The notes below the pieces were generated by a model that had not been told where the DNA came from, did not search any database, and saw only the letters and a program-made list of their open reading frames with translations. The translations under genes were made by a program, and so were the position numbers. This document shows, piece after piece, positions 1,015-55,471 of a stretch of 64,000 bases of DNA. The DNA lies in the sequence record NC_070882.1; one strand, written 5' to 3'. How positions within the stretch are numbered: position 1 is the first letter of the stretch; the number at the start of each line of letters is the position of its first letter.

Positions 1015-1063
1015 CATAAAGCCCTCTCCTTCGGGAGAGGGCGATATGCTTTATTTTTTTTTA
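1015..1063. terminator. Bidirectional terminator-like hairpin of the CATA..TATG family, followed by a T-tract
   Basis: CATA-AA-GCCCTCTCC-TTCG-GGAGAGGGC-GA-TATG then poly-T, between convergent genes. Confidence 0.8.
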
Positions 1064-1489
1064 TTTCTCGAAACTTAATTCAACTTGTGAAGTTGGAATG
1101 TAGGCTAGAGAACGAGTAGTGGGTTTTAAAATAACCGTATTACCAGTTAGAGGACCATCTAGGAATTCATCAGTATCGACGGGTACAGTCACTTTATCAC
1201 GGAGTACTTTAATAACATCATGGATAGTTGAATAATCAATTCTCTTCCCTGGAATAACAACCCCATTGAGAGCTTCTTCAATTCGATATCGATTAAAGAA
1301 TATTTGTTTCTGTCCTTTAAAATACTTGCTTGTCCCAACAGCCTGAATAGTAGCTCTTGAGTTATTACCGTTCTGCAACCATATTTCAATACCAGTCCAA
1401 ATAACATCCTCAGGACGAATAGCTGGATCCAACTTGTTCTGAATACTAAACTGTTGGAGTAGTTTAGATTTCATGTTTTTAACGTGCAT
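1061..1489 (-). CDS. Probable virion structural protein (142 aa)
   Basis: FFNRYRI motif resembles paralogs at 1499, 19852 and 37776; lies in a structural operon. Confidence 0.6.
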   Translation of the reverse strand: MHVKNMKSKLLQQFSIQNKLDPAIRPEDVIWTGIEIWLQNGNNSRATIQAVGTSKYFKGQKQIFFNRYRIEEALNGVVIPGKRIDYSTIHDVIKVLRDKVTVPVDTDEFLDGPLTGNTVILKPTTRSLAYIPTSQVELSFEK

Positions 1490-1498
1490 CTCTACTCC

Positions 1499-2377
1499 TT
1501 AGTTATAATGAATTCTAATTTCGCCAACGACATCCTGACATAAAGTTTTATGTAACTCGATAACAAGTACATTTTGTATATCAGTACGCCCACTAAATCG
1601 AGGTAGTACAATGCCATTATAAATGATCCTGTACTTTAGAACCCCTATTTCTTCAGTATAAGCGATGTTGTGAGAAGCTGGTGTCTTTGATGCTGTCCAA
1701 GGTTTATTCGTCACCTCGGCGAGAATAGCGGCCATCTTCTTAGGATCCGGATGGGTACCAGCCTTTGTTAGATGACGAAGATACTCTCTATGTTCACTAA
1801 AGTCATATCCAGTGATGTAATAAGTACCATTGATCAGTGAAAGATCATTAGCTTTAACATTGTCAGGTTTACCTACGTCAGGGAATTCAACTTTACTGAA
1901 AGTAGATAATTCCTTTCGTAGTGTATTAATCAAACGAACCCGAAGAAAACCTACAAAACGAAGAGACTTTTTATTCGCATGGAGAATGAATTCTTGGTTG
2001 AATACATTATACTCGGTATGTTCGAAATCATCTACATCAAAAACAATGTTATTTAACTCGGATAATTTTTCGACAACCTTTAAACTGGAATATGGAGTAT
2101 CCACATTCGATAAATCAAGCACTTGGGTTTGTCTAAAAAATGTCGTCAAATCTAATCGATCGTACGTATAAGTATCGAGTTCGACTTCCGGTAGTAAGTT
2201 ACCGGAAGCCTTACTGCGATTTACACTTATAACAATACGAGTCTTGGTACCACCCAGTGATTCGAACTGTTCAAGCTTAGTACTACCCGGAAACAATTGG
2301 GTAAAACAAGCATCGTTGATCATGTCGATTATAGATGTCCAAGGAGTAGACTGTAAATAGTCTCTCGTAATGTACAT
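1499..2377 (-). CDS. Probable virion structural protein (292 aa), phiKZ-like YxYxRLDL domain
   Basis: TYTYDRLDLTTFF motif; co-oriented and tightly packed with 2380..4548. Confidence 0.65.
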   Translation of the reverse strand: MYITRDYLQSTPWTSIIDMINDACFTQLFPGSTKLEQFESLGGTKTRIVISVNRSKASGNLLPEVELDTYTYDRLDLTTFFRQTQVLDLSNVDTPYSSLKVVEKLSELNNIVFDVDDFEHTEYNVFNQEFILHANKKSLRFVGFLRVRLINTLRKELSTFSKVEFPDVGKPDNVKANDLSLINGTYYITGYDFSEHREYLRHLTKAGTHPDPKKMAAILAEVTNKPWTASKTPASHNIAYTEEIGVLKYRIIYNGIVLPRFSGRTDIQNVLVIELHKTLCQDVVGEIRIHYN

Positions 2378-2379
2378 GA

Positions 2380-4548
2380 TTACTCCTTAAGTTTCGGCCA
2401 GTTAGGGTCAGTGGAATTCTGATATTGATCCAAGTCGCCAGTTGTATTCGGCGAATTATTAGTTTCGATAACAACATTACTTACGTTAACACCGTTTACT
2501 GGAATGTAATAATGGGCGTCAGCGTAACTAAGGTCTCTCACTTCTACAAATGGATTAATCCAGAACATATCCTGTTGACTATAAACGTAGTCGACGAATG
2601 GAGAAGTAGAATCATCAACAACACGATACGTATGCCCTGCCGACGTTCTATATGCTTTGACATTTTGAACAGCGACGTTGCAGATATAGTTACCAGCGGC
2701 ATCTACTGTAATATCCCCCACACGTGGCATTACCATACCAAGAATATGGAAATCGGTAAAGCTAACGTTACGAAGATATTGAAGAGGATAACTGGATAGA
2801 CGACCCATCAACCGTAGCAATTCACGCTGCACTTCACCTAGTGTAATAACACGAACCAAGTTGGAGCCAGTTGCAATATTGATGCAATCCATACACATCT
2901 GTTCTGCCTCAGTCTTATTTAGATTGAGGATATCGAAAGATGCTCTACGGAAATAATCTTCAAACTTGGTATTTGGTGGAGCCAGTTTACACATCCGATG
3001 CATGTAATGGAACTTTACAAGTTGCTCACAATAAGCACGACCAGCAGGATGCTCCTGGAAAGAATACATTTCCCATTGTAGGAGATATTCTTTGTGTAAA
3101 CGGACACAGTCCAGATAGAACTGCTCAGTGGAGATATAGTTACCCATTGGAGTAACCATGTCTTGCACAGCTGTAATTAGACGGTCAGGGATAATACGTT
3201 TATCAACAGCTGGTCGAAGTTCACCAAAGGTAGGTAACTTATCTCTTAGTACTTCATATGCTACAAGACTAGGGATGTTATCGGTTGGAATATCACGAGC
3301 CTTGGCATAGGTATACATCATCACAATGAAGGCATCTTTAACCGTCATGGTCATGAATTCGCCAGTCTTAGGATTAGGTATTTGAACATAAGCCCTATAT
3401 TTATCACTTGAGGCCAAATGTAACCATTCGTTCAGCAATACGCTCATTAATGAACGTACGGAACTATTAGACCGGTCAATCACCTCAGAGTCAAGAACTT
3501 TAGTTCTAAGCCAACTGTATTGATCGGAACTCATCTTATCGGTGATATCTTGCTCAGCATCGAAACGAACAAGAGGGTTCTCTCTTGCAAGGTCATCTTC
3601 CCTTTCAAGAACGTCTGCCACAGATGTCGTTTCTTGGCCTTCTTGTACGACAGGGAAGTTAACGTCGTGTTTTATCATATCGACGGTTGGTCGATGCTGC
3701 TCAGGCATTTTAGAACTGTTTTGTTCAATAGTAAAACTGATCAACGGAATGCCACGAGGTGTAAGAATATTCTTAACAAGACGTTGCCAAATTTCCTTCT
3801 TACCCGCATTGCGTTCTAGAAACGCAATGTTACGATATAACCATAAACGTTGCTCAAGAGAAAGATAGGGAATAAACTCATCCAACCCTTGGTGAGATGC
3901 GAGGTATTCCGTAACGTGATAACTATGCGCTTCGTTAGTCTTTGCATTCCGCAGACGAATAAGCATAATAGCAATAGGTAAACGGGTATATAAATGACCA
4001 AGGAAGTTTGCAAGGTATAGATCGTCAGTTAAATTAAACTGCGGGTTATACCAGCGAGTAATAAATACATTAACCCACGACTGAAGTTGATGGAAGAAAG
4101 AGTATTCATTATCTTCTACATACTTCGGATCAAAGTACAAAATATCCCCATCATTTGAATCTATTGCCGTTTGGATGTCAATTGGATATAAGATTCCAGT
4201 AATCAAACCTGCTTGTTCTGGGAACTGTCTTACAAGGCTATTGTATAAAACGCTACCCGGAATATACTCTCGCGCAGTAGCGCGGTGAAGCGCCAGATTT
4301 TCTTTTGTGAAATCGATGATTTCAAGAGTATCCGCGGAACGAACTGTCATCATGACATCTGTTTCATGATACTCACCAGCAAGGTTCTGATAATATTTCC
4401 AAGTCTCCGGTCTTGCTGGATCAGCTTCATGTCCGACCTCTTTTAGGCGTTCATTAATCTGATTAGCTATTTCAGAAAACTTGATTACTACAGATCTTGC
4501 AAGTCTCATGACATCGTCACGGTAAACTCCAAAATACATGCTACTCAT
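2380..4548 (-). CDS. Virion structural protein, baseplate-associated candidate (722 aa; phiKZ gp128-like)
   Basis: Long ORF divergent from the portal; synteny with phiKZ-like structural block (recalled). Confidence 0.6.
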   Translation of the reverse strand: MSSMYFGVYRDDVMRLARSVVIKFSEIANQINERLKEVGHEADPARPETWKYYQNLAGEYHETDVMMTVRSADTLEIIDFTKENLALHRATAREYIPGSVLYNSLVRQFPEQAGLITGILYPIDIQTAIDSNDGDILYFDPKYVEDNEYSFFHQLQSWVNVFITRWYNPQFNLTDDLYLANFLGHLYTRLPIAIMLIRLRNAKTNEAHSYHVTEYLASHQGLDEFIPYLSLEQRLWLYRNIAFLERNAGKKEIWQRLVKNILTPRGIPLISFTIEQNSSKMPEQHRPTVDMIKHDVNFPVVQEGQETTSVADVLEREDDLARENPLVRFDAEQDITDKMSSDQYSWLRTKVLDSEVIDRSNSSVRSLMSVLLNEWLHLASSDKYRAYVQIPNPKTGEFMTMTVKDAFIVMMYTYAKARDIPTDNIPSLVAYEVLRDKLPTFGELRPAVDKRIIPDRLITAVQDMVTPMGNYISTEQFYLDCVRLHKEYLLQWEMYSFQEHPAGRAYCEQLVKFHYMHRMCKLAPPNTKFEDYFRRASFDILNLNKTEAEQMCMDCINIATGSNLVRVITLGEVQRELLRLMGRLSSYPLQYLRNVSFTDFHILGMVMPRVGDITVDAAGNYICNVAVQNVKAYRTSAGHTYRVVDDSTSPFVDYVYSQQDMFWINPFVEVRDLSYADAHYYIPVNGVNVSNVVIETNNSPNTTGDLDQYQNSTDPNWPKLKE

Positions 4549-4583
4549 GGTAATTTACTCACTTGTTAAACGAGGAGCTTCAA

Positions 4584-7280
4584 ATGGCTCGACAAACGAA
4601 TGAGGTAGCGTACCCAAAGTTGCAGACGCTCCGTTTAGGATCGAAAGCAACTCCGACTAACGCCCTCCTCAACCTGTTGCGTAAGGACCCGAACGCAATT
4701 GGCAGCGAAGCAGCAAAGCCTCGTGTGAACGTAAACCGTTTCACATTAGATAAGGTTTCGCGTGATACTTCGCAAGAGATCGTTGACTCCGATTCTATTA
4801 TGCAATTGCTACCAGACCTAGAGCTGGTAGAAACGGTATATGTCGGTAGTATCATCGACCCTAAAGCACTTTCGGATACGGACCTCACATTCGCTATTGA
4901 TCCAGCTATCTTTGATAGCGAGATTGCAAAGCTTTTGCTTGAGCCAGTTGAAACGTACTTTAAACGAGACTATAAGATTGACGAGCGTCTGGACCTGATC
5001 CTTCGGGATTGCTTGTTCCGTAAGGGTGCTTCCATCTTAGCTGTTCTCCCTGAAAACGTTCTAGATAACCTTATTAATGGGCGTCGCCAGGTATCTATGG
5101 AAACTTTCTCCTCTATTAGAGATCGTGTCCAGAATACAACTAATGAAAACTTGGGTTTCCTTGGTCACCCAGATAAGAACAATATCTCTCTTGAGGGATA
5201 TCATGATAATGCTACAGCTAACCGTATTCGTGGAGATAAACTCCTCACTGTAACGGATAACTTTAACATTCTCAAAGTTCCATCGATGTCACAACGTGTA
5301 CGCGAAATGAATATTGCGCGTAAGCTTCGCGGTAACCAGATCTCGATGGAAAACGCTGTTCATAAATTCGGTAACGCTGAAATCGAACAGCTTTATCAGA
5401 ATAGACTAGGTGGCACTGAACATACTCAGGTAATCACAGCTCCTAAGTACATGAATCGGCCTTCGGTTGGACATCCATTGACTCTCCCTCTTCCAATGGA
5501 ATCCATTGTACCCGTATTCGTACAGGGGCGCCCACATGAACACATCGGCTATTTCTTGTTGGTCGACCAACATGGTTACCCGCTCTCCAAAGACTCAACC
5601 CGAGATTTTTATGGTGAGCTTCAATCAGGTTGGAAAGGTGGTAAGAATAACGACAACAGTTCTGAAGTTCTACGCCTTACTCGGGAAGCGATGGGTGCTA
5701 ATACTTCTAAACAAGATTTCGAAGTGGATGAAATCCAGCAAACATACAACGCGATTATTGTGAATGATCTTAACAACCGTCTTCGTAACGGCATGTATGA
5801 TCAGGAAATTGAGATCGGTCTAACTGAAGAAATTCAGAGGATCATGTTGTATCGTTCTTGGAAAGCTAAACATACTCAACTGGTATTCATCCCGGCAGAG
5901 CTTTTAGTTTATATTGCATTCGACTATAACGAAAATGGCATTGGTGAAACTCTTCTGTCTCGCTCGAAGATTATCGCAACCATGCGTTCTACTCTTCTTA
6001 TGGCAGAAGCTATTGGGGGTATGCGTAATGCTGTCGGTCGTAAGCGTGTAAGTATTACTCTTGATCCCGACGATACAGATCCGGAACAAACAATCAGTAA
6101 TATCCAATCGAATATCATGGAATCAGCGCACCGTAGTTTCCCTCTGGCTGCTCCTGACCCTACGCAAGCGATGGACCATCTGATTCGTTCTGGCTTTGAC
6201 TTTGAAATCAACACCAATGGTGCTGACTATGCAGAGACAAAGGTGCAATACGACGATTACAATACCAACGTTAATGCTGGGAATCCTGATCTACAAGATC
6301 GCCTTCGCCGTATGCACATCTCGGGTATGGGTGTACCACCTGAGAAAGTAGACCCGATGTCTTCTCCAGACTTCGCTACTTCTGTGGTACAGAATGACCT
6401 TGTAATGTCTCGACGTGTTAAAGAGAAACAGAAAGCGTTCTGTCAACACTTGTCTAAATTCATTCGTGTATTTGTAACGCACAGTTCTATCCTGCGTAAT
6501 CAAATGTACAAAATCATTCAAGACAACGTTGACATGTTGACATCGCCTGAACTTAAACAGTTGACAGTTGAAGAAGTAGTTGATGAGTTTATCACTGCCA
6601 TTGAGGTTTCTCTACCGGCACCCGATAATACTCAACATGAACGTCAAGCAGAATCGATGGATGCCTATGATCGACTTCTGACTATGGGCTTGGAAAACTA
6701 CATCACCAGCGAACTCTTCCCTGATGAGTTTACTTCCATACCTGGTCTGTCTGACCAGATAATGGTTCAGTTGAAAGCTGTATTTAAACGTCAGTTTATG
6801 GCAACACACAACATCCTTCCAGAACTTAATGTTCTTACAGAAATGGATGGTGATAAACCTGCATTCAGCTTGCTGGATTGGCTGAACGTACAACAGGAAA
6901 CTGTTGGCTCTGCTATCCTTAGCTATGCTAAGCATCAACAAGAAGCTAAGAAGCGTCTTGAGGCTAAGTATAAATCTACTATCGATGGAGCTGATGATGT
7001 AGGTGGTGGTGACAGTTGGAACAATGACAATAATGACGAGTCTGGAGATGACTCCTTCTCTGATTTAGATGGTTCTGATACGGACCTTGGTGTTGATGGT
7101 GGTACAGGTGATACTCCAGCTGGTGATAGTGATATCACTGACATGGATGAATCGTCCAGTGAAAATACCGATGAAACTAATCCCGAAGATGAGCCGCAAG
7201 TTGAGGGTCTTGAAGATCCAATATCGGCCGCTGAACAGGATGAACTGGAAGACGAAGAAGATACATCTGACTTCCGTTAA
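4584..7280 (+). CDS. Portal protein (phiKZ gp129-like), about 898 aa, with long acidic C-terminal tail
   Basis: GAGGAG RBS before ATG 4584; size, synteny, S-x-E protease motifs (VSME, ISLE, ISME) and D/E-rich C-terminus as in giant-phage portals. Confidence 0.7.
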   Translation: MARQTNEVAYPKLQTLRLGSKATPTNALLNLLRKDPNAIGSEAAKPRVNVNRFTLDKVSRDTSQEIVDSDSIMQLLPDLELVETVYVGSIIDPKALSDTDLTFAIDPAIFDSEIAKLLLEPVETYFKRDYKIDERLDLILRDCLFRKGASILAVLPENVLDNLINGRRQVSMETFSSIRDRVQNTTNENLGFLGHPDKNNISLEGYHDNATANRIRGDKLLTVTDNFNILKVPSMSQRVREMNIARKLRGNQISMENAVHKFGNAEIEQLYQNRLGGTEHTQVITAPKYMNRPSVGHPLTLPLPMESIVPVFVQGRPHEHIGYFLLVDQHGYPLSKDSTRDFYGELQSGWKGGKNNDNSSEVLRLTREAMGANTSKQDFEVDEIQQTYNAIIVNDLNNRLRNGMYDQEIEIGLTEEIQRIMLYRSWKAKHTQLVFIPAELLVYIAFDYNENGIGETLLSRSKIIATMRSTLLMAEAIGGMRNAVGRKRVSITLDPDDTDPEQTISNIQSNIMESAHRSFPLAAPDPTQAMDHLIRSGFDFEINTNGADYAETKVQYDDYNTNVNAGNPDLQDRLRRMHISGMGVPPEKVDPMSSPDFATSVVQNDLVMSRRVKEKQKAFCQHLSKFIRVFVTHSSILRNQMYKIIQDNVDMLTSPELKQLTVEEVVDEFITAIEVSLPAPDNTQHERQAESMDAYDRLLTMGLENYITSELFPDEFTSIPGLSDQIMVQLKAVFKRQFMATHNILPELNVLTEMDGDKPAFSLLDWLNVQQETVGSAILSYAKHQQEAKKRLEAKYKSTIDGADDVGGGDSWNNDNNDESGDDSFSDLDGSDTDLGVDGGTGDTPAGDSDITDMDESSSENTDETNPEDEPQVEGLEDPISAAEQDELEDEEDTSDFR

Positions 7281-7283: not shown

Positions 7284-7314
7284 CATAAAGCCCGGCCTTG
7301 AGCCGGGCAATATG
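7284..7314. terminator. CATA..TATG hairpin element between convergent genes
   Basis: CATA-AA-GCCCGGC-CTTGA-GCCGGGC-AA-TATG. Confidence 0.75.
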
Positions 7315-16148: not shown

Positions 16149-16575
16149 TGAAAGACTGGTGGAGTACTTAAAAGCGCTACCTCGTGCAAGATGGTACAAT
16201 CGCAAGAAGATAAATAGTATCCCTACCAAGGGTACAGTGGAAGCAAACTACTGGTTCCTTGGTAATGGTCAGATGCCAAAAGAACTTAGCGATTATCTGT
16301 TTGAAATTGCACCAACTATCAATGGGATAAAACCCAAAGAAGCATGTGTCAATATGTACGAGGTTGGTTTTGGTATGCCGGAACATATCGACATTGCAAT
16401 GTATCGATTTAATATGGTGATTGCATTGTGTGATAATGGAGATGGACTCGACCTAAATGGTGAGTTCATCCCAGATGTTCCTGGAAGAGCAGTAATCTTT
16501 CCAGCTAAAACACCACCGCATTCTGTACCACCCGTAAAACACCTACGCTTCGTTCTCATCTATCTCTACGAGTAG
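16093..16575 (+). CDS. 2OG-Fe(II) dioxygenase (start uncertain: 16045, 16093 or GTG 16159)
   Basis: EHID (HxD), PPHSV (distal His) and LRFV (2OG-binding Arg) with typical double-stranded beta-helix spacing. Confidence 0.75.
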   Translation: MNSLAQETSKAVVFSQPVSERLVEYLKALPRARWYNRKKINSIPTKGTVEANYWFLGNGQMPKELSDYLFEIAPTINGIKPKEACVNMYEVGFGMPEHIDIAMYRFNMVIALCDNGDGLDLNGEFIPDVPGRAVIFPAKTPPHSVPPVKHLRFVLIYLYE

Positions 16576-17074: not shown

Positions 17075-17096
17075 CATAAACCTCCCTAACGGGAGG
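17075..17096. terminator. One-sided hairpin element (CATA side only)
   Basis: CATA-AA-CCTCCC-TAAC-GGGAGG just after the stop of 16583..17071. Confidence 0.55.
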
Positions 17097-19771: not shown

Positions 19772-19800
19772 AGCCCCTCCTTAAGTGGAGGGGCTTTTAT
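19772..19800 (+). terminator. Intrinsic terminator
   Basis: AGCCCCTCC-TTAAGT-GGAGGGGCT-TTTAT. Confidence 0.75.
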
Positions 19801-22375: not shown

Positions 22376-22407
22376 CATACTGGAGTCCCCTTTGGGACTC
22401 CTATATG
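22376..22407. terminator. CATA..TATG hairpin element
   Basis: CATA-CT-GGAGTCCC-CTTT-GGGACTCC-TA-TATG. Confidence 0.75.
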
Positions 22408-28013: not shown

Positions 28014-28045
28014 CATAAAGCCCAGGGTTAACCCTGGGCTTTTAT
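28014..28045. terminator. Perfect 32-bp palindromic CATA..TATG element between convergent genes
   Basis: CATAAAGCCCAGGGTTAACCCTGGGCTTTATG; the stop codon of 28028..28789 lies in the loop. Confidence 0.8.
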
Positions 28046-28789
28046 GTCGTCTTTATCAACTTCGATACCGTTATCTCCAGGACGAATCATGGAGAAATAT
28101 TTAGCATCTATAAATTCAAAGTCCATGTGAATCAGCCGCTCGACCCTGAACTTAAATAGTTCAAACTTCTTCTCCTCGATAGTGAGTTTACTAACGTCAC
28201 GTTCGAAGAGTTTAGGTCCAATAAAATTGAAGCATGGCATTTGAACTTTAGACAAAGCAAGATAATGAGTGTGCATCCATTCATGGAAATCGTAAGTGAT
28301 ATACATCGCATAGAGAGCATCCAAGAATTTAGGTGTGAGCTCTTCTAATGGATGACTAACTACTTCCACGGGCATTTCTTCGCCGTATATTTCTTGGATG
28401 ATATTTTCAAGATCATCGATAACTTCACCAGGTAACGTGTAAGGCCAGATATTGATCGTAAGACCAATCTCGTCTTCAGGATTACCCATGTTATCCATTC
28501 TGTTTACATGATCTTCCGCGAGAATTCGCATCAAGAACGGACTGATACCTGTTAGGATAGAAGCATTGATAGTATCAGCGGAATTATCTCCGCCTCTATT
28601 AGCATACGCTTCTTTGAATTGCTCCGTTGTAACAAGACCACCTGTTAGAGTGGTCCAGTCATCATTTTCACGAAGCCAATATTCCTTAGTGGAAACCAAC
28701 CGTTCTGCTGCCTCCTTGTTAATTGTAGACATGACTCCAAGACGGGTGTCAAGTAATACATCAAGAGGTATCAGAATACGTTTGATCAT
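28028..28789 (-). CDS. Conserved jumbo-phage hypothetical protein (253 aa), degenerate HAD-like N-terminus
   Basis: ILIPLDVLLDTRLG start motif; synteny (gp147-like). Confidence 0.55.
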   Translation of the reverse strand: MIKRILIPLDVLLDTRLGVMSTINKEAAERLVSTKEYWLRENDDWTTLTGGLVTTEQFKEAYANRGGDNSADTINASILTGISPFLMRILAEDHVNRMDNMGNPEDEIGLTINIWPYTLPGEVIDDLENIIQEIYGEEMPVEVVSHPLEELTPKFLDALYAMYITYDFHEWMHTHYLALSKVQMPCFNFIGPKLFERDVSKLTIEEKKFELFKFRVERLIHMDFEFIDAKYFSMIRPGDNGIEVDKDDIKAQG

Positions 28790-29264: not shown

Positions 29265-29939
29265 TTACCCCACTAGGTTATTCTGTAAATGCATGGCCTT
29301 CAAATAGACGGACATGGTTTTGTTAGATTTAACTTGAGAAGGCGTCTCGGCCATAATGGAATCGAGAGAAGCTTCACCTGTTTCAATGATGGATCGATTC
29401 ATAGCGTTATATGCCTTTTCATCACCACCACGAAACTTAATCAGTTCGAGAACCATGTTGTTAAGACCTTTAGAGGCGTTAACCTGAATCTCAGGGGCAG
29501 ATAGACGTGCACCTTTACTATCACCAGTTGCCTGTCCAGAACGCTCGTCAACAACAGTATTAGAACCTGGGATAGAAGCTTTCTTAGCTAGCATCTGAAC
29601 CTGCCGACGAAGCGGAACCATACCAACTAGGTGTTTATTCTGAGTCTTATAAACTTGACCAGTGCCCGGATCAGTTAAGATAAGGTGTTGGAATAGTTCA
29701 AAACCAAGAGCATCAGCTACTTTATAATTCTGAGCGATACTTAGAGTTGGTTCTTCTAAGTTAGGAGCGTAGAGAGCCAGCACTTCACCTGCCTCTAGAC
29801 GTTCCATCCATTCAAAAAACTCTTCGTCAGAATAACGGTCAAAAAGTTCTTGATAGATTTTAACGTTCTCGCTTCCTGGTCGGAACATGTCGATGAAGTA
29901 TAGAATTTCTTTTTCAAGGACTTTACGATCGGGTTTCAT
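29265..29939 (-). CDS. Virion RNA polymerase beta subunit, C-terminal piece (gp149-like)
   Basis: SGQATGDSKGARLSAPE aligns with the RpoB QPLGGKA..GGQRFGEME motif; ELIKFRGGD matches the E.LT.KSDD region. Confidence 0.8.
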   Translation of the reverse strand: MKPDRKVLEKEILYFIDMFRPGSENVKIYQELFDRYSDEEFFEWMERLEAGEVLALYAPNLEEPTLSIAQNYKVADALGFELFQHLILTDPGTGQVYKTQNKHLVGMVPLRRQVQMLAKKASIPGSNTVVDERSGQATGDSKGARLSAPEIQVNASKGLNNMVLELIKFRGGDEKAYNAMNRSIIETGEASLDSIMAETPSQVKSNKTMSVYLKAMHLQNNLVG

Positions 29940-30681: not shown

Positions 30682-30710
30682 CATAGAGGGAGCTAATGCT
30701 CCCGTCTATG
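30682..30710. terminator. CATA..TATG hairpin element between co-directional minus-strand genes
   Basis: CATA-GA-GGGAGC-TAAT-GCTCCC-GTC-TATG. Confidence 0.7.
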
Positions 30711-33562: not shown

Positions 33563-33594
33563 CATATTGCCCCACCTAATGGTGGGGCTTTATG
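33563..33594. terminator. CATA..TATG element between convergent genes
   Basis: CATA-TT-GCCCCACC-TAAT-GGTGGGGC-TT-TATG. Confidence 0.8.
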
Positions 33595-34018: not shown

Positions 34019-35464
34019 CTATTTTTTCAAAATGAACTGTGTGTACGGTGCTTCATAGATGGCAGAACCATCATCAGTTACAAACACAGTCGAGTATGAA
34101 TAGGCTAACGGACCCGTAGCTACAATCAGTACTTCCACTTTAACACCCTCGCAGCTGATTCGAGCGAGTTGGTTACGAGAAGGAATATCGATTGTCAATG
34201 CCAATCGGAGTGATACCTTCTGTCCTTTATAATCGATAGGAATATCGAGATATGGTGTATTTTGAGTGATAGACTTCTTAAGTTGGGTTACCGTCTTCTT
34301 ACCGCTCTGTACAGTTTCATACAGGTGATCGGTAATGTCGATTTTATAAACCGACTCTCCTATCGTTCCCGCCGTGTATTCCGCCAAACGACGTTCCAGC
34401 ACGTTAAACATGCTTACCGCATCGTTAGCCATACGTGGTGGGTTGAGAGTCCTACTAATGAGACCCATATCTGGAGTTGCAAGAACAAAGATGTCATCAA
34501 AACGTACAAGAGCATCAAGCCCAAGTGATTCGATTTGCTGGCGTTGCTTTGCTCCACAAGCATTACCCAGATTGAGAATACCGAGTTCTGGGAGGTCAGT
34601 CCCAAATGCTTTCGTATGTAGCTCAATTAGATTCTCTAAATACTCGTCGGGTTCCCGAGATTTATAGACTCCAAAGGTTGCTTCGGAAATCCTTCTCCCA
34701 AGTAGCAAATCTGCTTTGGCCAATTTATCTTTGGCAGTATCCCTAGGACGATGGCCCGCATTATGCATACTTCCGAGGTTGTACATGTAGTAGGTCCCAT
34801 CCGAGGGTTTCCCACTATTAATTCCAAAGAGCAGACGGGATTCCAGGATCAGTGGATTCATCTGAACTTTTTTCAGCTTGTTGATGGCATCGCCTTCAAC
34901 CTTAACTGTTTTAGGTGTAACCGAAGCACCGCCTCCGCGTAGCGCATTGACGTCAGCCTTCTCGTTGCCTATATCTCCCGAATGGCCTTTAACCCATTTG
35001 AGTTCCAGTTTGCGGTCGTTCTTAAGCCAATCCATCTTTTGCTGGTTCAGAGCAATCCATAGATCTTTGTTGGCTACAGGATTACCATCTACCTTAACCC
35101 AATTGTTTTTTATCCATTTTGGGAGATAAGATTCGAGACCTTTTCTGACATACTCACTATCCATAAGCATGGTTAGTTTAGTAGCCTTAGAGGCATCTGC
35201 AATCTTAAAGCCGTTAATCGCCGCACTAAGCTCAGCGGTGTTGTTCGTCGGATTATCGACTACCTTACCGAAGGAGTCGATATATTCAATAACCGTACAA
35301 GTATCCTCGGCACCGACATCCTGATAACCCGATGCAGTTGGCTGCTGTTTTGTAGCAGCTTTAGACTTCATCGGTGTATTGGTGTAAGTGTAACCATGGA
35401 CTCCCCAACCAGCTAGACCTTGACGGAATGATCCATCTGTGTATAGCACTATACCGTCGCACAT
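34019..35464 (-). CDS. rnhA: RNase HI with long C-terminal extension (481 aa; gp155-like)
   Basis: YTDGS, TNNTAEL, DSEYV, NKDLW and WVKGHSGDIGNEKAD motifs. Confidence 0.92.
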   Translation of the reverse strand: MCDGIVLYTDGSFRQGLAGWGVHGYTYTNTPMKSKAATKQQPTASGYQDVGAEDTCTVIEYIDSFGKVVDNPTNNTAELSAAINGFKIADASKATKLTMLMDSEYVRKGLESYLPKWIKNNWVKVDGNPVANKDLWIALNQQKMDWLKNDRKLELKWVKGHSGDIGNEKADVNALRGGGASVTPKTVKVEGDAINKLKKVQMNPLILESRLLFGINSGKPSDGTYYMYNLGSMHNAGHRPRDTAKDKLAKADLLLGRRISEATFGVYKSREPDEYLENLIELHTKAFGTDLPELGILNLGNACGAKQRQQIESLGLDALVRFDDIFVLATPDMGLISRTLNPPRMANDAVSMFNVLERRLAEYTAGTIGESVYKIDITDHLYETVQSGKKTVTQLKKSITQNTPYLDIPIDYKGQKVSLRLALTIDIPSRNQLARISCEGVKVEVLIVATGPLAYSYSTVFVTDDGSAIYEAPYTQFILKK

Positions 35465-37731: not shown

Positions 37732-37764
37732 CATAAGGGAGAGGGGAAACCCTCTCCTTTTATT
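37732..37764 (+). terminator. Intrinsic terminator (CATA on left side only)
   Basis: CATA-AG-GGAGAGGG-GAAA-CCCTCTCC-TTTTATT. Confidence 0.75.
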
Positions 37765-40246: not shown

Positions 40247-40273
40247 GTGGCTCGGTTAACCGAGCCACTTTTT
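40247..40273 (+). terminator. Canonical intrinsic terminator
   Basis: GTGGCTCGG-TTAA-CCGAGCCAC-TTTTT. Confidence 0.85.
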
Positions 40274-43960: not shown

Positions 43961-43994
43961 CATATCGCCCCTACCATTCGGTAGGGGCTTTATG
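43961..43994. terminator. CATA..TATG element between convergent genes
   Basis: CATA-TC-GCCCCTACC-ATTC-GGTAGGGGC-TT-TATG. Confidence 0.8.
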
Positions 43995-48009: not shown

Positions 48010-48016
48010 TATAAAA

Positions 48017-48040
48017 GCCTCCCTTCGGGGAGGCTTTATG
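48017..48040 (+). terminator. Hairpin element (TATG side only)
   Basis: GCCTCCC-TTCG-GGGAGGC-TT-TATG. Confidence 0.75.
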
Positions 48041-48069
48041 TTATCTTACATTTAAAGCATTTTAAACCC

Positions 48070-48077
48070 TATATTAC
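48070..48077 (+). promoter_or_regulatory. Early (virion RNAP) promoter TATATTAC
   Basis: Exact phiKZ early-promoter core, AT-rich upstream, 37 nt before the 48115 start. Confidence 0.75.
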
Positions 48078-48114
48078 AAATGTGATAAAACTACCTATGT
48101 AAAAGGAAATTACC

Positions 48115-48426
48115 ATGAATATTCAAACCAATGTACTCCTTGAGTGTGGTTACCGTGATGGTGACAAAAACAAATCGATAGCAATCTATCGCTTCGAGCA
48201 GACTCTTCCAGGACGAGACCTTTCTTATTTTGCAGTAAGTAGTATCGATCCTAAAGAAGACCTCGATAAGTTCTTGGTATATGCCAAGTTCTTTAACACT
48301 CGCTCCGTTTCAACTGCATACTTGCACGCGTTCATGAAATATGATTCTGGTCAGGATTTCACTGAACAAGATTATCATGACATGAATGTAGGTAAGTGCT
48401 ACGAAGAGCTTCTCGCTGACGTTTAA
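48115..48426 (+). CDS. Early hypothetical protein (103 aa)
   Basis: AAGGA RBS; first gene after the early promoter. Confidence 0.75.
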   Translation: MNIQTNVLLECGYRDGDKNKSIAIYRFEQTLPGRDLSYFAVSSIDPKEDLDKFLVYAKFFNTRSVSTAYLHAFMKYDSGQDFTEQDYHDMNVGKCYEELLADV

Positions 48427-48441
48427 CGTCAAGGACTAGTC

Positions 48442-48798
48442 ATGTTTAACGTAGACAGTATCAATCGGTTAGCTAAGCGTATACGCCTTATTAAAGGGTG
48501 TCCCGCTCGGATGTTTGTTACACTGAGATCAGAGCATGGGCATTACTATGATCTTGATATCAGTGGTGACGCTTTCATCTTTGTAATGCGTAATGGCCGA
48601 CCAGATGCTACTGTTTACGGTCATTATAAAGAGGATGTTGGTGGGTACATCCAATTGACTCAATGGACATGTACGCTGACTGACGACGAAGTTGGAGACC
48701 TTCTCCACACAATAGATCGTACTATCGCACTGCATACAGAATGCAATTACATTGTACTTGCTAACAAACATCTTTTTAAGGATACATTTCATGTTTAA
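48442..48798 (+). CDS. Early hypothetical protein (118 aa)
   Basis: AAGGA RBS. Confidence 0.7.
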   Translation: MFNVDSINRLAKRIRLIKGCPARMFVTLRSEHGHYYDLDISGDAFIFVMRNGRPDATVYGHYKEDVGGYIQLTQWTCTLTDDEVGDLLHTIDRTIALHTECNYIVLANKHLFKDTFHV

Positions 48799-49486
48799 CA
48801 AAGATCTCTCGCGTGACGTAGCAATTGGTGTAACGTACTCCATCGATTTCCTTTGCCAGGTTTATGGCGTCAAGAATTCGCTGGATATGATTTCTTCTGA
48901 AGGTTCAAACCAGTCTCTTATCGATATCGCGCACGTACCTATGTTCCACCGTAGGGTTCCGATGAACCTGGTTCGATCGGCTTCCAACTCCACTGGTTGG
49001 AAATATCATGAACGTGATACCAATGAAGAGACCTGGAAAATGATGGACCTTACGGATGAAAAATTCCGTGAGTTCGTAATTCCTCTGGATGCTTATAATA
49101 AGATCCTGAAGTCCACTCCACCGACTGGCGTATGGGCAGCTGTATCGGGCCTATTCAATTCCATGTCGGCTTCCGAAGCATGCGATATTCTTTTCGGTAA
49201 AGCTACTTACGGTGAAGCCTTTGCTGTCTCAGAGGAACGTCGTCGTAAAGAGGCCGAGGAAGCCGCCAAAAAGGCTGTATATCGCACGATAGTGAAAGAG
49301 CTGCATCGTCAGGTCTCTGAGACCCAAAACGTCATAGACGCCATGGAGCGCTCCTCTTTCATTGAACGCTTGCTTCGCACTGGTGAATACGGTGACGTCT
49401 ACCGTATTGTTTTCATCGATCTGTACACTCAACACTTCGGTACTCCCCCGCGGGATAACGAGTGGAAAGGTACGGCACTTTTCTAA
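48791..49486 (+). CDS. Early hypothetical protein (about 231 aa)
   Basis: AAGGA RBS before ATG 48791; charged coiled segment ERRRKEAEEAAKK. Confidence 0.75.
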   Translation: MFNKDLSRDVAIGVTYSIDFLCQVYGVKNSLDMISSEGSNQSLIDIAHVPMFHRRVPMNLVRSASNSTGWKYHERDTNEETWKMMDLTDEKFREFVIPLDAYNKILKSTPPTGVWAAVSGLFNSMSASEACDILFGKATYGEAFAVSEERRRKEAEEAAKKAVYRTIVKELHRQVSETQNVIDAMERSSFIERLLRTGEYGDVYRIVFIDLYTQHFGTPPRDNEWKGTALF

Positions 49487-49927: not shown

Positions 49928-49960
49928 CATATGCCCTCTCCTTCGGGAGAGGGCTTTATG
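49928..49960. terminator. CATA..TATG element
   Basis: CATA-T-GCCCTCTCC-TTCG-GGAGAGGGC-TT-TATG. Confidence 0.8.
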
Positions 49961-49982
49961 TCAATAAAATTTTTTTCAGATC

Positions 49983-49990
49983 TATATTAC
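49983..49990 (+). promoter_or_regulatory. Early promoter TATATTAC
   Basis: Exact core 22 nt downstream of the hairpin element, AT-rich upstream. Confidence 0.75.
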
Positions 49991-50039
49991 CTAATTGAGC
50001 CGTATCTAAGGATACCGTTCGTTTAAAGAGGTGACTAAC

Positions 50040-50183: not shown

Positions 50184-50620
50184 CTTACCGCAGCATAGAG
50201 GTCCTTAGGAGCCACTTTGCTGTCGATCATTTAACGGATCTGTTGTACATAGATTCGGTAAGAGAACAGATTGAACATTTCCGTTTCTATTACCGTGGTA
50301 CTGAAAGACATATCTGTAAAGAGAAAGGCGAGTATTGGTGTCTTCATAGAGGACGTAATGGGGAGTGGGTTAAAGAGCAACTCACTGAAACAATCCTTTC
50401 TGAATTTAAGGTACTCGATCACGAATGGCGTATACTTGCTGGCATTGAGTTAGATGATACTACTGAAGTAAAAGAAGAACAAAAGGAGTATTATGATTAC
50501 TTGAAACAAAATGAAAAGAAAGTAGAAGAGGAGAGTGCTAGTGAATTGATGGCAGCATTGTTCATGGGAACAATGTTTACTGTAACAAGTTGCCACATCT
50601 ATCGGATGTGGAATAAGTAG
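50180..50620 (+). CDS. Early protein with C-terminal hydrophobic anchor (146 aa)
   Basis: LMAALFMGTMFTVTSCHIY near the C-terminus. Confidence 0.7.
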   Translation: MTYRSIEVLRSHFAVDHLTDLLYIDSVREQIEHFRFYYRGTERHICKEKGEYWCLHRGRNGEWVKEQLTETILSEFKVLDHEWRILAGIELDDTTEVKEEQKEYYDYLKQNEKKVEEESASELMAALFMGTMFTVTSCHIYRMWNK

Positions 50621-50747
50621 TTTGAGTGATGTTTGTTCATGGGAATATTTACCTGATAGGTAAGGATATGTAGGACTAAGAATAAGGAGGGGACTCTTTA
50701 TATTCTTTTATCCTACAGTTCTTTTAAATAGACCTAGGTAAATACTC

Positions 50748-51383: not shown

Positions 51384-51388
51384 GACAG

Positions 51389-51423
51389 CATAGAGCCCAG
51401 CCTTCCATAGGCTGGGCTCTATG
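51389..51423. terminator. CATA..TATG element between convergent genes
   Basis: CATA-GA-GCCCAGCCT-TCCAT-AGGCTGGGC-TC-TATG. Confidence 0.8.
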
Positions 51424-51426
51424 TCG

Positions 51427-51939
51427 TTAAGAGAGACCAAGTGCGGCTTCTTCCTCACGTGCTTTCTTTTCAGCAACCGCGCGCATGCGTTCGTTGAACT
51501 CTTCAGATGTCTCGTTAATGACACCAATTTCACCTTCACCGGCGGCGTGTTCAAACTCACCAAGATCTTCATTATCGATATCTGGTTCTGAACCGCGGTT
51601 ATCTTCACCAGGTACGGCAACGAACGGGTTCTTGTTCTTAGCTTGCCTAATGAACTCTGCCATCGATTCAACCAGATCACGTGCAGACTTATTACCTTCT
51701 GCTTCAATCTGTGTACGACGATTCTGGATAGTCGTGCGATCCATCGAGTCCATAACTTTCAACATCGAATCAATAGATTCTTTGTCGGTTGGAATAGTAC
51801 CATCCACACGGGAGGTCATTACACCATGAAGAATCCGATGCTTAACGTTTTGTGTAAGTTTTAGCTGGTCTTCATAAGAAAGCTCAGAGTACAAAACCTC
51901 TGGTTCTGTCGGAATAAATTCCGGGATCGGAGTTTCCAT
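51427..51939 (-). CDS. Conserved hypothetical acidic helical protein (170 aa)
   Basis: GAGG RBS; divergent from 52015. Confidence 0.75.
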   Translation of the reverse strand: METPIPEFIPTEPEVLYSELSYEDQLKLTQNVKHRILHGVMTSRVDGTIPTDKESIDSMLKVMDSMDRTTIQNRRTQIEAEGNKSARDLVESMAEFIRQAKNKNPFVAVPGEDNRGSEPDIDNEDLGEFEHAAGEGEIGVINETSEEFNERMRAVAEKKAREEEAALGLS

Positions 51940-51980
51940 TTTACTACCTCACTGTTGAGAAATACTCAACGGAATAACAA

Positions 51981-51989
51981 TATGCCATA
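51981..51989. promoter_or_regulatory. Candidate face-to-face late promoters TATG-C-CATA
   Basis: TATG on both strands in the 75-nt gap between divergent genes. Confidence 0.45.
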
Positions 51990-52014
51990 AAATGCGGATT
52001 AGGGAGTTTTCTAT

Positions 52015-52557
52015 ATGATTAATACGCTACGCCGCTGGTTACGGGTGTTCCAGCCAGTATCCAAAAAACAACTGTATTCAGCACTGCTTGATCAGTTTGA
52101 AGACGAGGGCGTGCGTCGTGATAATTATCCCATCATGCTTGCAGAATTATGGAATAGAATCGATGTCAAAGACTTCGGTGAAATTTCACCTAGAGACATG
52201 ATGGCAGTAAACATGGAGCTGCGACATACTAACGTAACTTATCTGATTGAACAGATGAATGTCATTAACACAATGGTATCCACCGGCGATCAAGCAGCTT
52301 TAGAACAAATTAGTAAGAATGAATTCACTCAATTCAGTAGAGTTAACTTAGATGAATACTTTGCTGATGCAAGAGGTTATTCTGTAGATATAGTCGACTC
52401 TTTAGAAAAGCTTAAGACGTATCTTGATAAACATGCAATGATTCTTGAAACACAAACCGCGAGCTTCTATAGAAGAGTTTTAGGAAGAGTGTATCATGAT
52501 ATCCTTGTACTTACCCAAACGCTTGTTGATACCATGAAGGAAGAAACTATGAAATAA
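52015..52557 (+). CDS. Hypothetical protein (180 aa)
   Basis: GGGAG RBS. Confidence 0.75.
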   Translation: MINTLRRWLRVFQPVSKKQLYSALLDQFEDEGVRRDNYPIMLAELWNRIDVKDFGEISPRDMMAVNMELRHTNVTYLIEQMNVINTMVSTGDQAALEQISKNEFTQFSRVNLDEYFADARGYSVDIVDSLEKLKTYLDKHAMILETQTASFYRRVLGRVYHDILVLTQTLVDTMKEETMK

Positions 52558-52610
52558 ATAGAGTTGCGAAACGAAACCTTCTCTTTAATCACCGTAGGTG
52601 TAAATGAAAA

Positions 52611-53366
52611 ATGGATTCTGTACAAGACCTTCTTTCCGATCCCCTTAAGGGAACGTTGCGAGCATCCGATATCCCGTGTTATCTGTTTCGTGAAGTTCTA
52701 TTGTGGCGTAAGATTAACCAACGTACATGGAACCGGCGGCAAGAAGCTTTCTTTGAGAAACCTTGGAATAAAAATAATCAAGACAAGGGTAACCTGAATA
52801 AAGCTCTTAAGTCAGACACGATGCAGTGGTCCGCTTTCAGAAAAGCAATTGACTTCCTGAACCCAGTCCACGCAACACTGGAGATTAAACTGACATGGCG
52901 TGACGATCGTGTTAGTTCGTATGTCATCACGATGGATCCCGAAGAACGGGAAGATGTTCTGACGACCAACAGTTTCCCTTGGCAGGATTGTAAGATATTC
53001 GAGAATGCTAAACCCGCAGGTACATTGATGGCGCATCTTTTCAGGCACGTTGTTGCAATGGAAGGGAAAGATAAACCAGATATTAAACTCTGGTGGGAGA
53101 AGCTTTTTGATGATTACACGAAGAATCCCGTTAATGTAGTTGGATTGACTCAGAAAGAAGTGAACCAAAATGTAAACACGTTACGACGTGCTCTGCTTGA
53201 TCCGAGGGTATCTTTGAATAACTTCCGTCGTGGCATCCATTTGCTACGCGCAGTTAAGGAAGAATATATTCTGACCCTCCGTTGGTCCGATGATCCAGTT
53301 GTCCGTGAATCACTTCCGGACTCTGTTCACAAGATCACTATAACTGACCCTGTAGTTGTGGAGTAA
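52611..53366 (+). CDS. Hypothetical protein with internal domain duplication (251 aa)
   Basis: AL..D.....FRKAI.FL......L.W.DD pattern occurs twice. Confidence 0.75.
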   Translation: MDSVQDLLSDPLKGTLRASDIPCYLFREVLLWRKINQRTWNRRQEAFFEKPWNKNNQDKGNLNKALKSDTMQWSAFRKAIDFLNPVHATLEIKLTWRDDRVSSYVITMDPEEREDVLTTNSFPWQDCKIFENAKPAGTLMAHLFRHVVAMEGKDKPDIKLWWEKLFDDYTKNPVNVVGLTQKEVNQNVNTLRRALLDPRVSLNNFRRGIHLLRAVKEEYILTLRWSDDPVVRESLPDSVHKITITDPVVVE

Positions 53367-53370
53367 GAGA

Positions 53371-53748
53371 ATGGATAACTGTATTGACCTGAGCTCTCCC
53401 CTTTGCCCTGATGTCCTTCAGTTCCATTCATCCGTGTTGAAACATACGGTTACCGGAACAGCTTTTTACAGCTGGAACGGTTTCCGTTTGTATCTTATTA
53501 CAGGAAAGGTTCATCCCAAATATCTAGATGGTATCAACCTTGAAGAAGCTGGGGTGGAAAGTAGATACAAGTTCGTTCCAGATCTGTACGAAAAGATGGA
53601 GGAAACTCTTCGTGTGTGCATTGCCAAGTACCCCCTCCTAAAACTTAAACTTAATAAAAACACACAGATTGTGTGGCGTGCTCACGGTATTACCCCAGCT
53701 GAAGAAGAATGGGTCAATATCGTTAAACGTGTTGCTTCAAGTATGTAA
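53371..53748 (+). CDS. Degenerate NADAR-like protein (125 aa)
   Basis: FYSWNGFRLYLITG...EETLRVCIAKYPLLKLKL resembles the phage NADAR pattern F.S.EGFW.WL.TG...KI..NP.L...L. Confidence 0.4.
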   Translation: MDNCIDLSSPLCPDVLQFHSSVLKHTVTGTAFYSWNGFRLYLITGKVHPKYLDGINLEEAGVESRYKFVPDLYEKMEETLRVCIAKYPLLKLKLNKNTQIVWRAHGITPAEEEWVNIVKRVASSM

Positions 53749-53760
53749 AGTGACTGCCTT

Positions 53761-53783
53761 GGGTTCTCCCTTCGGGGAGAGCC
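53761..53783 (+). terminator. Hairpin terminator
   Basis: GGTTCTCCC-TTCG-GGGAGAGCC; poly-T at about 53808-53819. Confidence 0.65.
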
Positions 53784-53830
53784 TAATGGCAATCATTGTA
53801 TGACTCTTATTTTTTTTTTGGTGAAATTCA

Positions 53831-54955
53831 ATGGTACAATTAGCGATCCCTTCATTTACTGGTTTACCAGATGCGGCTGTCAAAGAGGTTGATGCCTATA
53901 CAGAACAAAGCGCTGAATTAAAAAATCAGCTAGCCTCTAAGGTAACAGCATTTGGTGTAGGTGCAGACGAACTCATTCAAAAATCACTTGGTGTTGTTAA
54001 AGGTATCGGTAACAAGATCCTTAACAACGGTATTGATCTCAACATGGCTAGAACACGAATTGCGGATGCCCTAAAAGGGTCACGTAGTTCCATTGTAAGT
54101 CTAGCTACGGATGTTGAACGATCGATTATGGAAGAGTTAACCGGAGAAGATACCGGTACAGGTTATGTTCGTAAAGCAACGGATATGATCGATGGCGTTA
54201 AAATGGTTCTCAACCAAAAGGATTATTATTTTAAAGATGGGAACTTTAGCGGAGTTAATAGTATTATTGGGTTCATGGGTGACCTGACTAATAACTCATT
54301 GCTCCGTGTATTCGATCTTGGTGCTGAAGCAGCACTGATGAAAGGGATTATCGAAGAGGTTACAGCTTGGGGTATACCCGATCTAGTTGATGAAACCTTT
54401 GGAGCCAAGTGGACGGATAACAAGTATGAATACGACTATGATGATGATTTCAGATTCTCTGTTGTTAAGCGAGCTTCTGCTAGTATTAGCCCTAGTACTG
54501 ATCTTGCCACAATCGAAAGGTTAATGCTACATGGCGGTGTTTCAGCACTGATCGCTGAGAACCCAAATTTTCCTGCGCAGTTACTACAGAATTACGTGTT
54601 CCCTGAAGAATGTGTACCTGGTGGTCCTTTCCCTAAAATGATTCCTGACCCGAATAATCCAACTGGACCTGAGATCCCAGATCCAACTGGTGCACAGGAA
54701 CGTCCTAACTACGCCGACCAAATGGCTACTTTAGTACGCATCCTTAATCAACTCAAACCAGACTGGTTCACTACTCGGCGCCAGGGTCAACCCGTGTGGA
54801 ATCTTTACTTCCTAAGTCACGCTTCTGAAGATGCGACCACATTGATTCTTAGTAGTGAAACTCATCGTGAAGCAATGTTGACAGCTCCGTTCTACAAGAT
54901 GGAAAACCCAATAGAGCTGATCAAGTCGTTCTATCCTGATGCTGCTATTCAATAG
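53831..54955 (+). CDS. Virion structural protein (374 aa; gp174-like)
   Basis: TATG at 53799; synteny next to the protease block. Confidence 0.55.
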   Translation: MVQLAIPSFTGLPDAAVKEVDAYTEQSAELKNQLASKVTAFGVGADELIQKSLGVVKGIGNKILNNGIDLNMARTRIADALKGSRSSIVSLATDVERSIMEELTGEDTGTGYVRKATDMIDGVKMVLNQKDYYFKDGNFSGVNSIIGFMGDLTNNSLLRVFDLGAEAALMKGIIEEVTAWGIPDLVDETFGAKWTDNKYEYDYDDDFRFSVVKRASASISPSTDLATIERLMLHGGVSALIAENPNFPAQLLQNYVFPEECVPGGPFPKMIPDPNNPTGPEIPDPTGAQERPNYADQMATLVRILNQLKPDWFTTRRQGQPVWNLYFLSHASEDATTLILSSETHREAMLTAPFYKMENPIELIKSFYPDAAIQ

Positions 54956-54958
54956 CGA

Positions 54959-54991
54959 CATAAAGCCCTCCCTTTTGGGGAGGGCAATATG
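54959..54991. terminator. CATA..TATG element
   Basis: CATA-AA-GCCCTCCC-TTTTG-GGGAGGGC-AA-TATG. Confidence 0.8.
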
Positions 54992-55018
54992 CCGTCTTAA
55001 TCTAACTTAATTGAGAAC

Positions 55019-55026
55019 TATATTAC
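55019..55026 (+). promoter_or_regulatory. Early promoter TATATTAC
   Basis: Exact core 27 nt after the hairpin element. Confidence 0.75.
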
Positions 55027-55122
55027 AAACGTGAATTGGGTGAGATGTTCGAGCATCCCACCCAGTTTGCGATACGTCTGATTCGGTTAAACTCAGACTT
55101 TCTTCACATGGGATAGAAACCT

Positions 55123-55434
55123 ATGAAAAAATGGCCTTTCATTAACGAGAACTTCCGAAGATTAGTAAGAATCTTCTCGGTAGATGAAGGGCGGGAATAT
55201 TACCTTACACCTGAAGGTTTAGCACTGGATGATGTGAGTAATACTCTCGCATATAATTCGGTAGATAAGTATAAACTTGCTTTAAATAAAGCTCGTAAAC
55301 TTATAACCCAAGGTGTGTTCGGGAGATCAGTCTACCTGGACGGTCAAGATGTAACAGAAGAACAGATCAATGGTAAACCACAGTTAGTCCGTTGGCCACC
55401 TGTTAATGAAGAAGCTTATGGCTTCGTAGCATAA
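55123..55434 (+). CDS. Early hypothetical protein (103 aa)
   Basis: Single gene between an early promoter and a hairpin element. Confidence 0.7.
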   Translation: MKKWPFINENFRRLVRIFSVDEGREYYLTPEGLALDDVSNTLAYNSVDKYKLALNKARKLITQGVFGRSVYLDGQDVTEEQINGKPQLVRWPPVNEEAYGFVA

Positions 55435-55437
55435 AGG

Positions 55438-55471
55438 CATATCGCCCTCTCCTTCGGGAGAGGGCTTTATG
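55438..55471. terminator. CATA..TATG element between convergent genes
   Basis: CATA-TC-GCCCTCTCC-TTCG-GGAGAGGGC-TT-TATG then a T-tract. Confidence 0.8.

Follow-up and report, generated by a model that had tools for sequence, protein, structure and literature searches.

The window analysed here comprises 64,000 nucleotides of Pseudomonas phage vB_PaeM_PS119XW (record positions 124001-188000, + strand, of NC_070882.1; 301,543 bp; genus Pawinskivirus), hereafter PS119XW, and contains a family of short intergenic elements in which a G+C-rich hairpin is preceded by CATA and followed by TATG. The phage encodes PhuZ, a nuclear shell protein (48% identical to that of phiKZ), RNA polymerase (RNAP) beta-like genes and a GP123 homologue that is 70% identical to that of phiKZ. 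The presence of PhuZ, the nuclear shell protein and homologues of phiKZ RNAP subunits identifies PS119XW as a phiKZ-like jumbo phage. Three window genes listed as 'hypothetical' in RefSeq (59021-63382, 63385-64000 and 29265-29939, all on the - strand) have orthologues annotated as RNA polymerase beta subunits in the related phage HPP-Temi (83% identity), and their products are probably parts of the virion RNAP.

An independent scan of the window (CATA and TATG, each set off by 0-3 nt from a perfect stem that had to span 6 bp or more, include no fewer than 4 G/C pairs and enclose a loop of 3-9 nt) returned exactly the 11 complete copies listed in an initial annotation of this DNA, and returned no element in any of 200 dinucleotide-preserving shuffles of the window. 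The one-sided copies at 17075, 37732 and 48017 are likewise as listed there, and a search of the 64-kb window against Rfam produced no family match at the gathering score. The elements add new members to a terminator family that has been described before in two sister genera, those of phiKZ and 201phi2-1, and very probably function as factor-independent transcription terminators of the phiKZ type, in a bidirectional form.

Their position relative to genes was counted over the complete PS119XW genome, using the RefSeq annotation for gene junctions. A CATA-hairpin element is present at all 18 convergent junctions, and 16 of these carry TATG as well; none of the 17 divergent junctions contains a hairpin or the sequence TATGYYG (Y, pyrimidine). 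Intergenic GC hairpins are thus confined to convergent junctions and co-directional runs. The convergent junctions typically read TAA-CRR-CATA ... TATG-YYG-TTA between both stop codons, with a gap of 37-53 nt. Seven of the 11 full copies of the window lie between convergent genes, as originally reported, and they account for all seven convergent junctions of the window.

The copies in the window

The first of the convergent copies (1015..1048, between gp149(+) and gp150(-)) reads CATA-AA-GCCCTCTCC-UUCG-stem-GA-TATG and is followed by a T-run. The copy at 7284..7314 (gp153(+)/gp154(-)) carries the tail AATATGTTG on the + strand and TTTATGTCGT on the - strand; the positional orthologue at phiKZ 133072 shares its flanks and differs in the stem. 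At 28014..28046 (gp171(+)/gp172(-)) TATG overlaps the final codons of gp172, while at 33563..33594 (gp179(+)/gp180(-)) the two sides read TAAGACAA-CATA and TATG-CCGTTA, which brings the stop codons right up against the element. The stem at 43961..43994 (gp190(+)/gp191(-)) is altered by compensatory substitutions in HPP-Temi with the flanks kept. The copy at 51389..51423 (gp201(+)/gp202(-)) forms a perfect 15-bp stem, flanks included, and its GA/TC spacers are AA/TT in HPP-Temi. Finally, the copy at 55438..55471 separates gp207(+) from gp208(-), the gene for the head maturation protease.

The remaining full copies lie between co-directional genes: at 22376..22407 between the + strand genes gp169 and gp170 (sense tail TATATGTTGC), at 30682..30710 between the - strand genes gp176 and gp177, at 49928..49960 between gp198 and gp199 (+), and at 54959..54991 between gp206 and gp207 (+), with AATATGCCGT as sense tail and TTTATGTCGC as antisense tail. 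Motifs resembling early promoters are found 30-60 nt past three terminator copies: ATCTATATTAC (49975-49995), about 30 nt downstream of the copy at 49928; AACTATATTAC (55015-55035), downstream of that at 54959; and CCCTATATTAC (48070-48090), about 45 nt downstream of the half copy at 48014..48040 (+), which has TATG only and follows gp194(+). The same motif occurs in several divergent spacers of the genome, for example at record positions 16480, 39128 and 216122. The alignment to HPP-Temi breaks downstream of the half copy at 48014..48040 (window 48017-48430), where Temi has about 390 nt extra and additional small genes on the opposite strand, and an indel hotspot therefore adjoins the terminator.

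Two further half copies were found within + strand operons. The one at 17075..17096 (-), between gp162 and gp163, carries the TATGCCGT motif on the - strand only, and the same half-site state is seen in HPP-Temi and in phiKZ (142923), which suggests that the conserved antisense-only tail is either a maintained antisense-facing terminator or serves some other role. The other (37732..37764, between gp184 and gp185) combines a T-type sense tail (TTTTATT) with the antisense tail CTTATGTTTT. Three related terminator-like hairpins do not carry TATG: 19772..19795 (+), whose tail TTTATAATGC is also present in phiKZ at 145621; 40247..40268 (+), which has a canonical appearance and a TTTTTAC tail; and 53765-53780. 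The window also encodes one of the SbcC-like and SbcD-like 'palindrome-specific endonuclease' subunits of the phage (window 45142-47634 (+); record 48093-49091), in a genome with dozens of near-palindromes of 30-45 bp.

The stems consist of a C-tract arm and a G-tract arm, such as GCCCTCTCC/GGAGAGGGC. They had been described as varying freely, which holds in part only: the identical 22-nt stem-loop GCCCTCTCC-TTCG-GGAGAGGGC occurs three times in the window (1021-1042, 49933-49954 and 55444-55465) and seven times in the genome, and a second recurrent stem, AGCCCCTACC-TTCG-GGTAGGGGCT, has two exact copies in the genome and two variants in loop or stem length.

The conserved tail and its hairpin

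To keep the analysis from being circular, as it would be with a model fitted to the flanks, every perfect GC hairpin of the genome was gathered first and its flanks were looked at second; this gave 211 hairpins, 110 of them outside genes. In this flank-blind set the conserved flank exceeds four bases, and consists of the stem, 2 nt and then TAT-K-YY-G-T (K, G or T), mirrored on the 5' side as A-C-RR-M-ATA. In 50 of the 62 sense half-sites, exactly 2 nt separate TATG from the G/C-closed core stem, irrespective of stem or loop length. After TATG, each of two positions is a pyrimidine in 98% of the sense half-sites, followed by G in 61% and T in 71%; across the different half-site sets, the corresponding ranges are 93-98%, 53-71% and 62-86%. 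The tail is cleaner at convergent junctions, where K is G in 93% of half-sites. Half-sites that do not contain TATG often end in TTATT-YCGT, and the two kinds of tail together yield the consensus TTAT-K-YY-G-T. The claim that CATA and TATG never change is therefore only partly correct: the absence of covariation stands, while in the flank-blind hairpins the base after TAT is G or T, and many half-sites occur. The apparent invariance was an effect of ascertainment.

The identity of K differs between regions of the genome. A long + strand block at record positions 216168-286170, holding about 135 small genes, has mostly T-type or plain U-rich terminator tails. Inside this block K is G in 5 and T in 11 cases, as compared with G in 56 and T in 11 outside it (Fisher p = 9e-5). 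From the early-promoter-like motif at the start of the block and the reported unidirectional layout of phiKZ early genes, we infer that it is a putative early-transcribed region.

Whether the flanks are read as sequence or are merely paired was assessed from the complementary 4-mer pairs that flank the 110 hairpins. CATA/TATG accounts for 31 of these pairs and register shifts of the same motif for most of the remainder, while the covarying alternative GATA/TATC was found once; the stem positions, by contrast, show all four Watson-Crick pair types at each position. The absence of covariation, the fixed 2-nt register, the one-sided copies and the retention of flanks where the stems of relatives differ all support a reading of the 3' half as sequence, as had been proposed. 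The case for the 5' half is weaker, since the partner of an invariant sequence would not covary either; however, the 14 antisense-only copies described below argue that CATA serves the opposite strand as an independent tail as well.

About half of the full copies have CATA and TATG in different registers, and complementary spacers occur in only two of the roughly 21 in-register PS119XW copies. Among 95 elements from IMG/VR, complementary spacers were observed 44 times against 42 expected under independence, so that a designed internal loop was rejected as an explanation of the spacer mismatch. What does stand out is that AA adjoins the stem on both strands in just one of these 95.

Comparison with related phages revealed fixed rather than covarying flanks. 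In HPP-Temi, where loops and some stems have changed, with compensation, 24 of 25 half-sites keep the flank, and positional orthologues in phiKZ (for example at 126775, 133072, 142923 and 147154) have unrelated stems and identical flanks. The tail adjoins GC hairpins in 41% of half-sites in phiKZ and in 21-38% in 201phi2-1, KpGz_1, RAY/Ea35-70 and LucasX, where about 1-2% would be expected by chance. In Goslar, RSL2/RSF1, Aphrodite1 and KpLz_1_41 the enrichment is weak or missing, and SPLA5c has the tail in 0 of 36 half-sites. Scanning IMG/VR for the exact pattern gave 87 loci; contigs of 188-325 kb account for about half of these, and 201phi2-1, PhiPA3 and Noxifer are among the phages hit. 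The retention of the tail across hosts and G+C contents suggests that it may be read by the multisubunit RNAPs of the phage itself rather than by host factors.

The hairpin, for its part, appears to work in RNA. Folded as RNA, the 11 full copies of the window form the GC stem and a CAUA:UAUG helix, separated from it by a 2x2 internal loop in most cases, with energies of -19 to -35 kcal/mol and z-scores of -4.9 to -8.3. Among the 93 co-directional hairpins of the genome, the loop in the sense transcript is UUCG in 39 cases and CGAA in one; a function symmetric in DNA would be indifferent to loop orientation, which argues for a hairpin that operates in the transcript. Furthermore, the distance of the tail is constant when measured from the base of the stem, as compared with a variable distance between CATA and TATG along the duplex.

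The proposed role in termination and its alternatives

In the model that we favour, the nascent RNA would fold into a G+C-rich hairpin, usually capped by UUCG, followed by two bases, mostly UU, and then by UAU-K-YY-G-U, where the polymerase would stop. By analogy with phiKZ and 201phi2-1, in which they have been mapped, transcript 3' ends are expected at the motif in PS119XW. CATA is the same tail on the opposite strand and not a separate signal. With both halves present, transcripts arriving from either side would be terminated, which accounts for an element at every convergent junction, and the palindromic look of the elements would follow from their facing both directions. Within operons, the antisense half would stop antisense read-through, and may also pair with UAUG and so close the 3' end of the transcript.

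Certain observations fit less well with termination. Canonical Rho-independent terminators have a U-tract of about 7-9 nt directly behind the stem, and a generic rule of at least 5 T in 8 selects only some of the copies: the best tail is UUUAUG, and on the other strand it is AAUAUG or GAUAUG. In many copies, one strand thus has a post-stem tail that would be a poor U-tract for a canonical intrinsic terminator. In addition, the 93 co-directional hairpins comprise 22 with both halves, 13 with TATG on the sense side only, 14 with TATG on the antisense side only and 44 with neither, so that antisense-facing TATG (36 of 93) is as common in operons as sense-facing TATG (35 of 93). A pure sense-terminator model predicts neither this frequency nor the 14 antisense-only copies, and these points weigh against the reading of the elements as terminators. 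A rule that places the motif only on the transcription-downstream side was rejected on the same counts, sense-only and antisense-only copies being equally common. The sense half is nevertheless the stronger and better conserved of the two within operons.

The identification of TATG as the phiKZ late-promoter core in the initial annotation is correct: in phiKZ, the G is +1, and the tetramer is necessary and not sufficient (Yakunina 2015, PMC4666361). No statement was found, however, of the preference for single-stranded or fork templates that the same annotation ascribed to the phiKZ non-virion RNAP (nvRNAP); the structural work used a mismatch-bubble analogue (PMC12809450). A terminator fused to a late promoter, or termination coupled to re-initiation, would let nvRNAP start at TATG and either restart the next operon or fire antisense RNA at convergent junctions. 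It would profit from a polymerase that needs an open strand, carries its sigma-like subunit permanently and, once halted, would already hold a bubble over TATG; from a G that in operons precedes the next start codon by 13-50 nt, enough for a workable leader; and from the identity of all seven GP123 residues that line the TATG pocket in PS119XW. The distribution of the motif runs counter to this idea, since promoters must lie at divergent junctions and one at a convergent junction would yield only antisense RNA: TATGYYG is obligatory at the latter and absent from all 17 of the former. In seven of the 11 window copies, each TATG faces the 3' end of a convergent gene, whereas a late promoter would lie upstream of a late gene and be oriented towards it. 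TATG itself occurs nine times in divergent spacers against about seven expected by chance, and the candidate promoter TATGs there run into A/T-rich sequence rather than YYG. The PS119XW orthologue of the late promoter P119L (divergent spacer 114544-114680) reads TATGTAGACA, a different downstream context, and has no hairpin, as in phiKZ. The terminator tetramer is the same as the late-promoter core, and the polymerase pocket that reads TATG is conserved in PS119XW; however, proven late promoters such as P119L lack both an upstream hairpin and a YYGT behind the G, and the terminator tetramer tolerates T for G at K. Moreover, at least three window copies (48017, 49928 and 54959) have an early-type promoter motif of their own downstream, and transcripts started at the antisense-facing halves within operons would run against the gene upstream. 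We therefore consider outward-facing promoters, one of the options raised initially, to be unlikely.

Two other roles would leave termination secondary or dispense with it. If the primary role were post-transcriptional, the CAUA:UAUG helix joined to the GC stem would serve either as a blunt 3' end that resists exonucleases or as a target recognised by an RNase or an RNA-binding protein, and 3' ends might arise from processing. Minimum-free-energy folds do pair CAUA with UAUG in 11 of 11 copies, the two halves co-occur in operons above independence (by the counts given above), and a ribonuclease is annotated in the window (34019-35464). On the other hand, one-sided copies are common (27 in operons), the halves are out of register as often as described, and conservation is higher in the sense tail than in the 5' half; with 201phi2-1 elements stopping reporter transcription in uninfected cells, such a role seems very unlikely. 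Even less probable, to the point of being nearly negligible, is a palindrome acting in DNA, whether as the binding site of a dimeric protein, as a cruciform or as a mobile repeat akin to repetitive extragenic palindromes or miniature inverted-repeat transposable elements (REP/MITE-like). Loop sequence tracks the direction of transcription 39 to 1, spacing is constant from the stem base and variable on the duplex, and sites are syntenic with phiKZ instead of scattered, all of which speaks against it; in its favour are the palindromic symmetry, the recurrence of identical stems (one of them seven times in the genome) and the SbcC- and SbcD-like nucleases of the phage. The mobile-repeat variant was rejected: by BLAST, the copies resemble one another over only about 30-60 nt, repeats do not flank them, and their positions are shared with HPP-Temi and phiKZ.

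Termination at the tail might be linked mechanistically to promoter recognition. In phiKZ, GP123, a beta-like core subunit and not a dissociable sigma factor, holds T-3 A-2 T-1 G+1 of the single-stranded non-template strand in a pocket formed by F151, K158, H185, K190, H331, Y399 and Y406, which needs an already open strand (PMC12809450). The seven residues are identical (7/7) in PS119XW and HPP-Temi. Re-use of this pocket at the terminator tail is conceivable, although we regard it as rather doubtful. An elongating nvRNAP would be caught by its own pocket at the TATG located 2 nt past the hairpin and would pause 5-6 nt beyond the stem, whereupon the weak AU-rich hybrid and the hairpin would release the RNA, in a manner comparable to sigma-dependent pausing at -10-like sequences. 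If true, this would account for a promoter tetramer fixed at terminators, for its fixed register and lack of covariation, for G outside the putative early (virion-RNAP) block as against T inside it, and for the fading of the motif in those chimalliviruses in which the pocket has diverged. On this last point, a comparison of eight phages (homologues 19-28% identical, except that of PS119XW) is only suggestive: SPLA5c, with the most diverged pocket, has no TATG half-site among 36, and Ea35-70 keeps both the aromatic pocket and the motif, while RSF1 has the same pocket and a weak motif and is thus a counter-example.

The elemental pause consensus of bacterial RNAP consists of G at -10, a pyrimidine at -1 and G at +1. 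The G-rich 3' arm of the PS119XW hairpins, together with the Y-G at tail positions 8 and 9, resembles this consensus, in which case the RNA end would fall 8 nt after the stem; such a pause and capture by the pocket are not mutually exclusive.

For annotation, the tail provides a precise, strand-aware terminator model (stem, 2 nt, TAT-K-YY-G-T) for PS119XW and its relatives, one that marks the ends of transcription units and includes antisense-facing ends. The elements are compact and bidirectional, and terminators of this family have proved functional in Pseudomonas reporters. The four bases that make up the promoter core of the polymerase also recur, at a fixed register, in its terminators across several genera; if the two are mechanistically linked, the promoter-recognition site of a core subunit would double as the reader of a termination signal.

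Relation to published terminators

The initial annotation had allowed that the motif might already have been noted as a terminator consensus, and this is indeed the case (PMC10914365; PMC11512511); a sequence-specific terminator, the first of its options, is supported. In phiKZ, 61 terminator regions, predicted to be intrinsic (ARNold), were described at transcript 3' ends mapped by Oxford Nanopore Technologies (ONT)-cappable-seq, with a motif made up of a stem-loop followed by YTTATKYYGT (E = 1.7e-212; in full, BCCYCCCCHWWDGGGRRGGBYTTATKYYGT). Six bidirectional terminator regions were located between convergent phiKZ genes, and 9% of terminators across six phages were antisense to genes (Putzeys et al. 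2024, microLife, PMC10914365). The PS119XW elements share the GC-rich stem of C- and G-tracts, the short loop and the TTAT-K-YY-G-T right after the stem, and they too are mostly intergenic and bidirectional between convergent genes. They differ in belonging to another genus, Pawinskivirus, in which the terminator role is predicted from sequence. Not given in the portions of the phiKZ report considered are the mirror-image 5' half (ACRRCATAA), the register of 2 nt, the regional split between G and T and the overlap with the TATG promoter core.

The likeness to 201phi2-1 may extend to the 5' half. In that phage, a phiKZ-like motif A co-occurs 21 times with a second motif, B, which makes the hairpin longer, 15 sites are bidirectional, eight terminators proved strong in vivo in P. 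chlororaphis, and the long stems were interpreted as a possible defence against antitermination (PMC11512511). The CATA half lengthens the hairpin in PS119XW as motif B does in 201phi2-1, where full palindromic copies are visible in the DNA, and motif B may correspond to the CATA half.

Bidirectional intrinsic terminators are also found in bacteria, where a hairpin lies between an A-tract and a U-tract. PS119XW resembles them in having one hairpin for both strands between convergent genes, with A-rich 5' and U-rich 3' flanks. The phage elements differ in that their flank is a specific UAUGYYGU and not a U-run, and in that UU often adjoins the stem on one strand only, the other having AA or GA.

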